From Chrysemys picta bellii (lineage: Eukaryota): a stretch of 64,000 bases of DNA. The translations under genes were made by a program, and so were the position numbers. The notes under the pieces were generated by a model. The model did no database searches. It was not told where the DNA came from and saw only the letters and a list, made by a program, of their open reading frames with translations. Positions 1,380 through 24,647 of the stretch are shown in pieces (within the stretch, counting starts at the first letter, position 1; each line of letters opens with the position of its first letter). Location of the stretch: assembly GCF_011386835.1 (NCBI RefSeq), contig NC_088802.1, positions 2,976,001-3,040,000 of the forward strand, written 5' to 3'.

Positions 1380-2306
1380 TTAAGGACGTTGCCTAATTTT
1401 CTGATAGATCATCATTTGGCAAATGAAGATTGGGATTGTAACAAGAACTATGATCACCTTATTCCTGGCTACCCAGGCCAACCATCCCGGCACTTTGACC
1501 ACATACTGAACGAGCCCCGTGTTGTCGGGATACACGTTGATTTCATTCTCCCCTCTTCCAGAGAGAAAGACCATCCTCATTCCCACGGTGCTGATCACCA
1601 GCCGGGCGTTGTTCTGCAGGCACACCGGCTCCTTGGGGAATCTCTCCAGGGTGAGTTCAAAGCATCGTCTCAGCACCTCAGTCATCTTCTCTCCGGCCTC
1701 CAGTCGGTTCTGCACCTTCAGCAGGTTCTCGACACTCAGCCGTTCCGGGTGGGAGTGCAGCCGGGATAGATACACGTCCATTCTTGGCTCTTTCACGTCG
1801 TACCGGGGTTCCCCGTTGAGGTAATATATGTAGATCTCGTGTTTCCCATCTCCGGATTTAAATTCCACCACCCTTCCTCTGCACTGGATCAGCATCTGGG
1901 CATTGTCCTGTATGCTTGGAGGTTCTCTCATGAATTCCTGCAGAGCGAGGTCCATGCAGGTTCTCAGATTGTCAGTCATTTTCCCCTGGGCTTCTAGTCT
2001 ACCCTGCACTCTCAGGAGGTCGACGACACTTAAGGGGTCTGGTTCTCCAGCTTCATAATTCACTGTCCCATGGGGAAAGAAAAATACCGCGAGCCCTATC
2101 GCTGCAGGCAGCAGTAACAGCACCAGTTTCTGATGTGTTTGGCTTAATAGCAATCTCCAGACCCTCTTGACCACATCCTTCAAACCCCTGGTGAAGGACA
2201 AGAATATCGGCCAAATCCGAGTTCGGATGCAGAGCACCAGGATGTACCATGTTCCCCGCAGGAAGTGGAAGACCAGCCTCACGCAGCTCCTCAGCCCCAC
2301 GTTCAT
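1380..2306 (-). CDS. Uncharacterised 308-aa protein with two ~98-aa repeats and N- and C-terminal hydrophobic segments (paralogue of 23121-24647)
   Basis: Intact complex-sequence ORF with an in-frame TGA four codons upstream of the ATG. Repeats at aa 89-186 and 187-~280 share LSV.LL.VQ.RLEA..KMT..LR.C..L.L..F..EP...Q.NA...I......F.SG.G..EI. Hydrophobic stretches at aa 61-77 and 284-301. Repeat 2 is 40/70 identical (hand count) to repeat 1 of the 508-aa ORF. Confidence 0.85.
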   Translation of the reverse strand: MNVGLRSCVRLVFHFLRGTWYILVLCIRTRIWPIFLSFTRGLKDVVKRVWRLLLSQTHQKLVLLLLPAAIGLAVFFFPHGTVNYEAGEPDPLSVVDLLRVQGRLEAQGKMTDNLRTCMDLALQEFMREPPSIQDNAQMLIQCRGRVVEFKSGDGKHEIYIYYLNGEPRYDVKEPRMDVYLSRLHSHPERLSVENLLKVQNRLEAGEKMTEVLRRCFELTLERFPKEPVCLQNNARLVISTVGMRMVFLSGRGENEINVYPDNTGLVQYVVKVPGWLAWVARNKVIIVLVTIPIFICQMMIYQKIRQRP

Positions 2307-2559
2307 TCTGGTTCCTCACCGGAGGTCCCGGTTCCTGGACCTCGCAGCCCAGCTCACGCTCGGGTGCAATTCCTTAGCTCGGGACCTGAAGCCAACGAAA
2401 GGGACAACGGTCTCAGTTTGAGGGCAGTGGGGTTGGTGAATGTCGCAAAACTTGGACCCGGTGAGTGAAGCGTGATTTGTAATCGTAGGTGCCTGCTAGA
2501 AGGTGGGGCTCTTCCATAACAGGGAATCCCCACCACATATGGGCACAGTGTGTGGGGGA

Positions 2560-2750
2560 AGCCCAGGGCTGGGACAACAGGGGCTCGTGGGTCAGGAGTG
2601 AGGAGCACTGGCAGAGCTGTGTGTGGGGGGAGCCCAGGGCTGGGCTAGCAGGGGCTGCGGGTCGGGAGTGAGGGGCACTAGTAGAGCTGGGGGGAGCCCA
2701 GGGCTGGGCTAGCAGGGGCTGTGGGTCAGGTTTGAGAGGCACAGGCACAG
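2560..2750 (+). repeat. Dispersed G-rich minisatellite copy (gggctgggctagcaggggctgcgggtcgggagtgaggggcac unit)
   Basis: About 3 degenerate units of the family that also occurs at 42580, 46910, 48995, 52810 and 63320. Confidence 0.8.
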
Positions 2751-3259
2751 CTGTGTGTGGGACTATCCAAGATTTGAGTCCCTGCCTGGCTGGCTAAGCA
2801 CACGATAATCCTTCCGTGCCTCCTCTGCACTCAACTGAAGCCATCTCGTTAGCTTGGGACATCCACCAACTTCACCCCAGGGGTTCTCATGGCCACCATG
2901 CGTGCCTAGCTGCTGATGTTCCCGGTGCCCAAATCCCCCTCACCACAGCCCGTCTGAGCCTCCCACCTGTAATTCCAGCTCCTGGAGCCGCCTGCTGGGT
3001 GTGCGTGAGGAATGGTCCGTCTCCTCTGTCTCAGCCGGACGCAGGGTCCCAACGAAGGGGCCGTGTCCCTCCATCCCCAAGTGCTCTTCCCTCCTGGGAC
3101 TGGTGTTTCCAGCTGGAACATAAGGGAACAAGGTTCTGAAAAGGGCCCTGAATTTAGACACCTCCTTCTCTGATCCCCCTGAGTTACTAAACAGGCCTCT
3201 CTCTTGGACTCTGACTCCTAAGGGCCTTCAAAGAGCTAGCCCGGGGCCTGCGCCCAATG

Positions 3260-22882: not shown

Positions 22883-22991
22883 TCTTTGTCCCTCCCCATC
22901 GAGCCCCAGCTGAGATGATCTCGTTCATTTTCCAGATCCCAAGAGAAGCAGGCACTGGGTGAAGCAGGAATTTCCCACACACCATGGCTCG
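22883..22991. promoter_or_regulatory. 109-bp duplicated element with an NF-kB site (copy 1; copy 2 at 37187-37295)
   Basis: Ungapped 98/109 match to 37187-37295. GGAATTTCCC at 22967-22976 is the reverse complement of GGGAAATTCC. Confidence 0.6.
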
Positions 22992-23120
22992 TGCATGACA
23001 CACACACACACACACACACCCCTCGGATCATCCCCAGAGAGCGAGGACTGGACGCATCAGGTGAAGCACAGCTGGTAGCTCAGACTCATTGGGTCCAGAG
23101 GCCTCGAGTCCCTCCAGAAC

Positions 23121-24647
23121 ATGTTTCCTAAGCTGAGGCAGCGCACCTCCAGGATCCGAGGGGTCGAGAGAATCCCGCCAGCTCAATCTGCAGGAGCCGA
23201 ACTGCGCACAGAATCCGGGGTTCCTATCCGTTGGCCCAAATGGCCCTTCAGGATGTTCATTATTGCCACAGAATTGATGCTCAGTGCCTGGTACCGCTTT
23301 GCCCCGCAGCCCTTGATTCAGAAAGTGGAAAGGTGGAAGGGGCCAGAGCAGCTGAACGTTGGGAACCTAAAGAAAGCTCAGGGCCGACTGCAGTCCCGGG
23401 GACTGATGAACCCAGAGCTGAGAAGGTGCTTTGAGCTGGCCCTGGAGGAGTTCCCCCGGGAGCCCCTGTGTGTGCAGAACAACGCCCAGTTAGTCATTGA
23501 GCTGGGGGGACAGCGGCTGGTGTTTGTCTCTGGAGCAGCCAGGTGTGAGATCACAGTGTCCCACACCAATGGGGAACCCCACTACCATGTGCAAGAGCCC
23601 ACAGGGGATGTGTACCTGGCCAGGTTATGCTCCCGTCCCCAGCCGCTGACCGTGGAGACCCTGCAGGGTGTGCAGGATGCGCTGGAGAAGCGCGGGGTGC
23701 CGGACAAGAAGCTGGTAGCCTGCCTTAAGCGGGCCCTGGTGGAGTTCCCCCGAGAGCCTCGGTGTGTGCAGCGCAACGCCCAGATGGTGATCAGGCATGA
23801 CCACACCGAGCTGGTGTTTGTGTCGGGCCAGGGGAAATGCGAGATCACTGTGTCTGAAGGTGACGGGGAGCCCTGCTACAAGGTGAAGGAGTCCACAGTG
23901 ATGGTGTATTGGAAGTGGTTACGTTCCCACCCACAAAGGCTGAGCGTGGGGAGCCTGCAGAGAATTCGGGACAGGCTGGAGTCCTGGGGGGTGATGACCA
24001 AGGAGCTGAGATGCTCCTTTGATCTGGTGCTGAGGGAATTCCCCAAGGAGCCAGAGTGCGTCCGGGAGAACGCCAAGATGTGCGTTTCCTGGGACGAGAC
24101 GAAGCTGCGGCTGATCTCCGAAGATGGGGACTGCGAGGTCTCCGTGACCTGCTGTGACGGGAAACCCAGCTACGAGGTGAAGGTGAAGAGCTGGGCGATG
24201 TATCAGGAGAGGATGCATCTCTCTGAGCAGCCACTGAGCATTGAGAACCTGGAGGGCGTGCGGAGGGAGGTGAGGGGTCTGTCAGGGACTCCCGAGAAGG
24301 TCAAGGAGACCTTGAACGTGGCTGTTAAGGATTTCTCTAATGAGCTGGGCTGCCTGCAGGAGAACACCCGGCTGGTCATTGAGTGCGACAGGGGCGAGAT
24401 GGTCTTTGTCTCCGGGAAAGGGGAGAATAAAGTGAACGTGTGCACCATTGACGGGAAGCCCAGTTACAATGTCAGAGCCACCACTTTAGTAGCTTTCTGG
24501 AGGGAGATCCTGAAACTATTCCACAAGCTCTGGGAGGCCTTGGTGAAGTTCATCTCCCAAGTCTTGGGCAAAGTCTTAGACAAAGTCTTGGGCAAAGTCT
24601 TGGGCAAAGTCCTAGACAAAGTCTTGGGCAAAGTCCTACCAATCTGA
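23121..24647 (+). CDS. Uncharacterised 508-aa protein with four colinear 98-aa repeats and an amphipathic (KVLG/D)n C-terminus
   Basis: Intact 1.5-kb ORF of complex sequence. Repeats at aa 75-172, 173-270, 271-368 and 369-466 align without gaps (L.V..L..V...L; FP.EP.CV..NA..VI; LVFVSG.G..EITV...GEP.Y.V). A paralogue lies at 1380-2306. Confidence 0.92.
   Translation: MFPKLRQRTSRIRGVERIPPAQSAGAELRTESGVPIRWPKWPFRMFIIATELMLSAWYRFAPQPLIQKVERWKGPEQLNVGNLKKAQGRLQSRGLMNPELRRCFELALEEFPREPLCVQNNAQLVIELGGQRLVFVSGAARCEITVSHTNGEPHYHVQEPTGDVYLARLCSRPQPLTVETLQGVQDALEKRGVPDKKLVACLKRALVEFPREPRCVQRNAQMVIRHDHTELVFVSGQGKCEITVSEGDGEPCYKVKESTVMVYWKWLRSHPQRLSVGSLQRIRDRLESWGVMTKELRCSFDLVLREFPKEPECVRENAKMCVSWDETKLRLISEDGDCEVSVTCCDGKPSYEVKVKSWAMYQERMHLSEQPLSIENLEGVRREVRGLSGTPEKVKETLNVAVKDFSNELGCLQENTRLVIECDRGEMVFVSGKGENKVNVCTIDGKPSYNVRATTLVAFWREILKLFHKLWEALVKFISQVLGKVLDKVLGKVLGKVLDKVLGKVLPI
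24558..24641 (+). repeat. Coding 12-bp tandem repeat x7 (aaagtcttgggc / aaagtcctagac)
   Basis: Encodes QVLGKVLDKVLGKVLGKVLDKVLGKVLP. Confidence 0.95.

Follow-up and report, generated by a model that had tools for sequence, protein, structure and literature searches.

The 64,000-nucleotide stretch of the Chrysemys picta bellii genome analyzed in this study (contig NC_088802.1, positions 2,976,001 to 3,040,000, hereafter the window, which contains no N) carries two genes that are members of an undescribed family, whose unit is an alpha/beta domain of about 98 residues. Gene A occupies positions 1380–2306 on the minus strand and encodes 308 aa, and the open reading frame (ORF) of gene B occupies 23121–24647 on the plus strand and encodes 508 aa. 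They form a divergent, head-to-head pair with a spacer of 20.8 kb. An earlier interpretation made from the letters alone (the sequence-only reading) had described two intact ORFs that share one domain in two and four copies, and both ORFs were recovered here with the same coordinates, strands, and lengths.

The product of gene A consists of a predicted N-terminal helical hairpin, two repeats, and a predicted C-terminal transmembrane helix, and that of gene B of four repeats and an amphipathic tail. Based on alignment and scanning with a profile hidden Markov model (HMM), the repeats of gene A were placed at 1749–2042 (repeat 1, aa 89–186) and 1455–1748 (repeat 2, aa 187–284, whose last helix continues into the predicted transmembrane segment) and those of gene B at 23343–23636 (repeat 1, aa 75–172), 23637–23930 (repeat 2, aa 173–270), 23931–24224 (repeat 3, aa 271–368), and 24225–24518 (repeat 4, the terminal type, aa 369–466). 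Cutting the proteins at a fixed period gives six units, two from A and four from B, that align without gaps, as expected for the gap-free 98-aa unit noted earlier. MAFFT inserts one single-residue gap, in A repeat 2 alone, which is the copy that had been described as merging into the hydrophobic end of its protein. Pairwise identity among the six repeats ranges from 20 to 49 of 98 residues, and the hand count of 47/98 for the first repeats of A and B was reproduced exactly on recomputation. BLASTP aligned A with B at 44% identity over 183 aa (E = 2e-44), with additional out-of-register matches, and the likeness between the repeats of the two genes is far beyond chance. All six match the family profile with E values between 1e-33 and 1e-42, and a six-frame HMM scan of the whole 64-kb window returned these six units and nothing else.

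Transcript contigs from four small public runs, the sizes of which suggest RNA-seq, were placed on positions 800–5200. Three of these runs (X25, X27, and X3), representing two organisms, revealed one minus-strand structure of three exons for gene A. Exon 1 (3905–3982, non-coding) was found in contigs of X3 and X27, and its 5′ end lies at 3982 or farther upstream; it is followed by the non-coding exon 2 (2967–3112) and by exon 3 (969–2385), which contains the complete coding sequence between the last 79 nt of the 5′ untranslated region (UTR) and the 3′ UTR, with a 3′ end at about 969–1075. Both introns (2386–2966 and 3113–3904, minus strand) are of the GT..AG type. The joint 2383/2965 (equivalent to a cut shifted by +2) is present in X25, X27, and X3 and the joint 3112/3905 in X27 and X3. 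Because the unique intron sequence of gene A has zero depth, these runs represent RNA; gene A is transcribed and spliced. The upstream exons are non-coding because an in-frame TGA precedes the ATG by three codons, and the proposed single coding exon is thus borne out for gene A by the RNA contigs. A 75-residue N-terminal extension in isoform X2 of Chelonia mydas was rejected as a translation of 5′ UTR exons, the frame being closed by the TGA in Chrysemys. In the 3′ UTR, at 1289–1292, RNA contigs of both organisms carry small insertions relative to the window (14 nt in total in each), so this site is variable in length.

A single coding exon is also likely for gene B, and its true start may be Met45 rather than the first ATG. 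A good acceptor (cccttcag/g, possible acceptor at 23251) lies directly before the ATG of Met45 at 23253, and the gene B orthologue of Mauremys is annotated as starting at the equivalent of Met45. An (AC)10 microsatellite at 23000–23019 precedes the first ATG of ORF B by 100 bp. Run X3, which is RNA as judged by its spliced gene A contigs, holds 71% of the sampled words of gene B.

Comparison among turtles indicates that both genes evolve quickly, with their reading frames maintained by selection. The gene A orthologues of Malaclemys, Chelonoidis, and Chelydra are all exactly 308 aa in length. Across 308 codons without indels, the ratio of nonsynonymous to synonymous substitution rates (dN/dS) among Chrysemys, Chelonoidis, and Chelydra is 0.35–0.42, with 40 nonsynonymous and 32 synonymous changes against a neutral expectation of approximately 3.3:1 (z about 4.2). 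The 3′ flank of gene A is 87% identical and contains about 50 gap columns, versus none in the coding sequence. Gene A is under purifying selection, as the sequence-only reading had argued, and the coding regions contain no frameshifts. For repeats 2–4 of gene B, dN/dS is 0.67 (z about 1.7), with a dN of 0.12 compared with a flank divergence of about 0.13; the ORF and the order of its repeats are kept in several turtle families. Gene B evolves fast, which may reflect constraint mixed with diversifying selection.

That the two ORFs are non-functional leftovers, such as decaying duplicates, a transposon or viral protein, or artefacts of gene prediction, might be suspected from the transposon ORFs that surround A and B and from a dN of gene B that approaches the divergence of its flanks. 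Nevertheless, gene A gives a spliced transcript, its 308 codons have remained unchanged in number in three families, in contrast to flanks with many indels, and orthologous repeats have been kept since the split of turtles, crocodilians, and squamates. Moreover, no transposon or viral domains were identified by Pfam, and no viral relatives were found in BFVD or in an IMG/VR scan with B that reaches close relatives only. This explanation is hardly credible.

A domain profile and alignment were built from 65 single repeats of family members. L4, L9, F37, E40-P41, N47, S63 (in the SGxG turn), and Y81 are each present in at least 90% of these repeats, with a period of 98 aa; the conserved positions comprise the hydrophobic core, an EFPxEP loop, the N-A pair before strand 1, the SGxG turn, and the tyrosine of strand 4. 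No histidine is invariant and the commonest cysteine occurs in 48 of the 65 repeats. The domain lacks invariant catalytic-looking residues, which makes binding likelier than enzymatic activity. An AlphaFold2 model of a single repeat, based on the 65-repeat alignment, reached a predicted local distance difference test score (pLDDT) of 81 and a predicted template modelling score of 0.69. It contains a short strand, helices at 6–18, 24–39, and 42–46, strands at 48–54, 57–62, 68–73, and 80–84, and a final helix at 87–97, and the modelled domain is of the alpha/beta type with a four-stranded antiparallel sheet. Both repeats have pLDDT values >90 in the model of whole A, and the domains are arranged head to tail without linkers. 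These models agree with the succession of helices and four beta strands guessed from the residue pattern.

Searches against known families and folds returned no described relative. Pfam gave nothing above threshold on A, B, distant members, or the 65 single repeats, and neither a PDB sequence search with the 65-repeat profile nor Foldseek against PDB gave a match with E < 0.1. Searches of BFVD and Swiss-Prot models and feature and structure searches of the ESM Atlas yielded no match. Among the AFDB clusters, Foldseek retrieved uncharacterized proteins only: reptile ones with template modelling (TM) scores of 0.87–0.91, and four further entries with 13–22% identity and TM scores of 0.64–0.77, which, from their accessions, we take to be coral and bivalve proteins (the organism column is blank). 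The domain, which the sequence-only reading had not recognized, is rated here as a new domain family and probably a new fold.

Several weak similarities might instead assign the domain to a known fold or family from which it has strongly diverged, namely, the alpha/beta sandwich of REDD1/DDIT4, an OTU-like fold, or the CPI-17 helices that inhibit PP1. The Pfam model PP1_inhibitor (PF05361, CPI-17) matched A with an E value of 0.0027 and the Pelodiscus orthologue with a summed 31 bits, but the score on A was 18.2 bits versus a gathering score of 22.4, no single stretch of the Pelodiscus orthologue passed, and the match vanished on the 65 single repeats. The likeness to CPI-17/PPP1R14 is a sub-threshold match across the repeat junction, covering a helical stretch formed by the end of one repeat and the beginning of the next. 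The solved structures of CPI-17 are all-helical bundles, whereas the domain model is alpha/beta, and no CPI-17 chains were retrieved from PDB by sequence or by fold. Weak Foldseek rows include OTU-type proteases, but with probabilities ≤0.15 and root-mean-square deviations (rmsd) >10, and the family has no invariant Cys/His pair; OTU-like rows and rows for the N-terminal part of FBPase were rejected for low probability and high rmsd. REDD1/DDIT4 (PDB 3lq9) recurred with a noise-level score, an rmsd of 4.1 Å, and 9–12% identity, and has no detectable sequence relation to the repeat. The sheet of REDD1 is reportedly mixed with a psi-loop according to its 2010 structure paper, in contrast to the plain hairpins of the repeat model. 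All structural scores fall under the noise level of the tool, where the best Z of an unmatched model is typically 7–8, and membership in a known fold is improbable.

The profile of the six window repeats was scored against 1.84 billion representative proteins at a cut-off of E 0.001. A total of 107 proteins passed, about 70 of which are true members with full-length repeat matches. The remaining matches (bacterial PD40 beta-propeller and Big_4 Ig-like proteins) have repeats of about 43 aa that cover profile positions 54–88 only and were rejected as false positives. True members were identified in turtles, crocodilians, lizards, and snakes, as well as in the eel Conger conger and the hemichordate Ptychodera flava. 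Every named member is called “uncharacterized” or bears a misnomer that is clearly of automatic origin; databases already list the proteins as uncharacterized LOC entries, and a literature search with the LOC identifiers of 12 family members found no paper. The number of repeats per protein ranges from 1 to 20 with recent duplications of repeats, for example, two adjacent repeats of Chelonoidis B that are identical, and the family is thus copy-number-variable as had been anticipated.

A search with the Conger protein led to a conserved teleost family of elopomorphs, characiforms, and clupeiforms (14 matches; examples are Megalops LOC118787113, Astyanax LOC103021512, and Conger COCON_G00018480). 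Its members are approximately 263–330 aa in length with two repeats, no Pfam match, and no hydrophobic anchor; they are slowly evolving, show no variation in repeat number among the 14 matches, and are equally unstudied. The comparison of teleost and reptile repeat profiles by hhalign (probability 96.4%, E 1e-9) identifies the teleost family as a true homologue of the reptile one. As in the reptile genes, most of the protein is encoded by one large coding exon in fish, and the idea that the reptile genes are retrogenes was therefore dropped.

A maximum-likelihood tree of the 65 repeats has few alignment columns and many unresolved forks, and only its well-supported clades were used. Repeat 4 of gene B groups with the last repeats of Alligator sinensis and Sceloporus proteins (support 100/100), its repeat 3 falls in a clade including alligator (100/99), and its repeat 2 forms a turtle-wide clade (96/99). 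For gene A, repeat 1 groups with the first repeats of alligator and other turtle A-type proteins (100/97) and repeat 2 with the last repeats of alligator and snake A-type proteins (97/79). These position-specific clades imply that both architectures had arisen before turtles, crocodilians, and squamates diverged. The family was present in the sauropsid ancestor at the latest and has teleost and hemichordate relatives; it is old and patchily distributed, with a great expansion in non-avian reptiles, rather than specific to turtles.

A third family gene, LOC135974678, is located 32.6 kb to the left of the window (CM062329.1, 2,937,608–2,943,412). Its single exon of 5.8 kb codes for 1934 aa and 20 repeats; the protein has no hydrophobic anchor and was amplified as two-repeat units (identity of repeat i to repeat i+2 up to 0.83; maximum pairwise identity 0.94). 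At least four family genes lie on one 207-kb scaffold in alligator. Pelodiscus sinensis has two tandem three-repeat A-type genes (locus positions 10738–12096 and 26024–27382), the proteins of which are 96% identical, and this pair is a recent duplication. The same head-to-head pair as in Chrysemys is present in other turtles, where the spacer measures 8.2 kb (Chelonoidis) or 4.6 kb (Chelydra); its greater length in Chrysemys is mostly due to a long interspersed nuclear element (LINE) at 7226–14068 (minus strand), which is not part of the family and encodes, according to Pfam, an ORF1 with a zinc knuckle and an ORF2 with endonuclease, reverse transcriptase, and zf-RVT domains. This LINE is fairly intact, with a 777-aa ORF2, a zf-RVT piece, and a 447-aa ORF1-like protein containing a CCHC knuckle. 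A fragment with about 78% identity to gene A repeat 1 occurs in the spacers of Chelonoidis (locus positions 6247–6590) and Chelydra (2676–2990), and none was detectable in the Chrysemys window. The B-like gene of Chelydra lies, together with its 3′ flank, between the A promoter and the homologue of window positions 15.6–17.6 kb, indicative of a rearrangement or an additional copy.

The Ly6 neighbors mentioned in the sequence-only reading are indeed present, with Ly6/uPAR exons identified by Pfam at about 34.3, 41.1, and 49.5 kb. Elsewhere in the window, an ORF with a GIY-YIG nuclease domain (45955–46359, minus strand, E 2e-6) is probably part of a Penelope-like retroelement. Long GC-rich tandem arrays at 17562–19292 and 52000–56300 have open frames of 100–576 aa in several frames and on both strands; these proline/serine-rich repeat arrays look like satellite or minisatellite DNA, not genes.

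Cores of the interferon-stimulated response element (ISRE), the binding site type of interferon regulatory factors (IRFs), had been noted upstream of both genes, and GAAAGTGAAAG was located at 3976–3986 (minus strand) and 16155–16165 (plus strand). The former lies at the 5′ end of gene A exon 1. A TATA-like element, AAAAATAAGG, occurs 34 nt farther upstream (4011–4020, minus strand), about 25–30 nt before the inferred start site, in the alignment of three turtle families and would be the TATA box of gene A. The ISRE core is identical in Chelonoidis and Chelydra and lies within a block of 90–92% identity that includes the TATA-like box. By motif, the start region of gene A thus resembles the core promoters of interferon-stimulated genes that carry an ISRE. 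Of the two motifs noted earlier, that of gene A is a conserved core at the start site and not upstream of it; the site at 16.16 kb is not assignable to gene B. It belongs to a candidate promoter and first exon at 16070–16271 (plus strand), a conserved block with overlapping IRF cores at 16155–16165 and a CAG/GTAAGT donor, for which gene B is a candidate only: the segment is collinear with the window in Chelonoidis and lies beyond a B-like gene in Chelydra. No convincing conserved ISRE was found in the alligator and fish loci.

Membrane association, as put forward in the sequence-only reading, is predicted for A from conserved hydrophobic ends and for B from an amphipathic tail only. Kyte–Doolittle analysis identified two hydrophobic segments in A, aa 61–79 and 285–303, which are conserved in turtles and alligator. 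The first (2070–2126, minus strand; hydropathy 2.25) is a predicted transmembrane segment in the second arm of a helical hairpin (aa 3–75), which the model of whole A resolves into helices at 3–35 and 39–75. The second is part of the C-terminal hydrophobic helix (aa 285–308, positions 1383–1454, minus strand; modelled at 282–304), which ends in the basic sequence KIRQRP. The putative cationic amphipathic helix at the C-terminus of B (24519–24644, plus strand) has a hydrophobic moment of 1.3–2.0 and a net charge of +1 to +3 per 18 aa and falls below the transmembrane threshold. Tandem Repeats Finder detected in this tail a coding tandem repeat of 12 bp (24559–24635, 6.4 copies) that specifies (GKVL/DKVL)n; it has lengthened the tail in Chrysemys, and the hydrophobic tail of orthologues differs and is non-repetitive. 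Hydrophobic segments are absent from the 20-repeat protein, the fish family, and Ptychodera.

The repeats probably lie on the cytoplasmic side of the membrane. This reading is based on few signal peptides, the existence of anchorless members, MG starts, no consistent cysteine pairing, and few glycosylation sequons: most family members have no signal peptide, and several begin with MG motifs that fit the myristoylation consensus. Cysteines lack consistent pairing, are often odd in number, and are swapped for Ala, Ser, or Asn. N-glycosylation sequons amount to 0.26 per repeat, with no conserved position and none in the repeats of A. The opposite topology, in which the repeats face the exoplasmic side (lumen or surface) as in the neighboring Ly6 proteins, A-type proteins span the membrane twice, and the family comprises surface or luminal receptors or ligands, is less likely, although it has some features in its favor. 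Basic residues of A lie N-terminal to the first and C-terminal (KIRQRP) to the second predicted transmembrane segment, so that both termini would be cytoplasmic by the positive-inside rule. In the A-type proteins of snakes and lizards, the repeats are preceded by a strong type-II-like anchor; among other members, some carry strong N-terminal anchors, and Sceloporus and some unnamed proteins have signal-peptide-like N-termini. Against an exoplasmic location, neither a signal peptide nor an anchor precedes the repeats in B-type proteins, in the 20-repeat paralogue, in the teleost family, or in the hemichordate protein, and the MG motifs, cysteine patterns, and scarce sequons noted above speak for the cytoplasm.

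Taken together, we propose that both proteins are anchored to a membrane through hydrophobic ends of their own, A by the N-terminal helical hairpin with its transmembrane segment and by the C-terminal transmembrane helix, and B by the cationic amphipathic C-terminal helix. Because a linker-free string of small globular modules would be fixed to a membrane, the repeats may act as a tethered array for multivalent binding or scaffolding, with the cytoplasmic face as its most likely location. Gene A would be driven by a core promoter with TATA and ISRE elements and hence be inducible by IRFs and interferon, and a role in innate immunity would underlie the expansion of the family in reptiles and its changing repeat numbers. 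As a whole, that is, including the family, the membrane array, and the link to interferon, this is the best explanation, which we hold with slightly more confidence than doubt.

A number of observations weigh against parts of this proposal. The dN/dS of gene B is only marginally below neutrality and its transcription is supported indirectly. The ISRE core has four matches in the window versus 0.75 expected, which is weak evidence when taken alone. The transmembrane segments and lipidation motifs are sequence predictions, the charge distribution of A would place its repeats on the exoplasmic side, and some lizard members have the signal-peptide-like N-termini. No bird, mammal, or amphibian members were found among the names looked up in protein databases, as distinct from genomes.

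An interferon-linked immune role of the family is the best single guess because of the ISRE promoter, the gene cluster, the turnover of repeats, and the fast evolution, and we regard it as tentative and somewhat short of an even chance. The earlier wording “probably immune-related” is accordingly reduced to plausible, given the ISRE at exon 1 of A, the fast evolution, and the dynamics of the cluster, rather than demonstrated. It is doubtful, yet a serious possibility, that the family is real and non-immune, consisting of fast-evolving structural, reproductive, or tissue-specific membrane proteins, with an incidental ISRE-like motif. Fast evolution and changes in copy number are typical of reproductive genes as well, and the teleost relatives, being slowly evolving, single, and soluble (50–85% identity across distant orders), appear more housekeeping-like. 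Nevertheless, the ISRE core lies exactly at the start region of gene A beside a TATA-like box, three turtle families share it in identical form within a block that is better conserved than its flanks, and the family forms a tandem cluster with recent duplications as in many immune families. A more comprehensive version of the interferon-linked role, in which an undescribed, ancient animal fold was recruited in non-avian reptiles into membrane-tethered multivalent arrays of 1–20 units that act as IRF/interferon-induced innate-immune effectors or sensors, with this arm lost in birds and mammals, is rather unlikely in its entirety.

Provided that the predicted fold is correct and that matches are indeed lacking, the repeat represents a new protein domain that is confidently modelled and has no relative among solved structures. 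Its presence from hemichordates to reptiles and absence from the vertebrates commonly used as models would explain why the family has gone unstudied. Features reminiscent of lineage-specific immune gene families are the reptile gene cluster, the range of 1–20 repeats, the varied membrane anchors, the fast evolution, and the ISRE at the start of gene A. Innate immunity has been little explored in reptiles, and a testable candidate family of the interferon response would therefore be useful. The domain deserves a Pfam/InterPro entry and a solved structure even if there is no link to immunity. “New” refers here to a new domain family, not to a demonstrated new mechanism.

Compared with known systems, the family shares with Ly6/uPAR proteins its chromosomal neighborhood, and both are fast-evolving families of small domains that are attached to membranes (as predicted for A and B). 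They are unrelated in sequence and fold: A and B lack the ten-cysteine three-finger pattern, and the Pfam model UPAR_LY6 matched neither of them, its matches in the window being confined to the neighboring exons. A parallel in organization, by analogy only, may be found in interferon-induced repeat or scaffold proteins, such as the tetratricopeptide repeat arrays of IFIT. They show no homology to the family and have another fold, and A and B differ from them in their predicted membrane anchors; the likeness lies in arrays of small binding modules, an ISRE promoter, lineage-specific gene clusters, and fast evolution.

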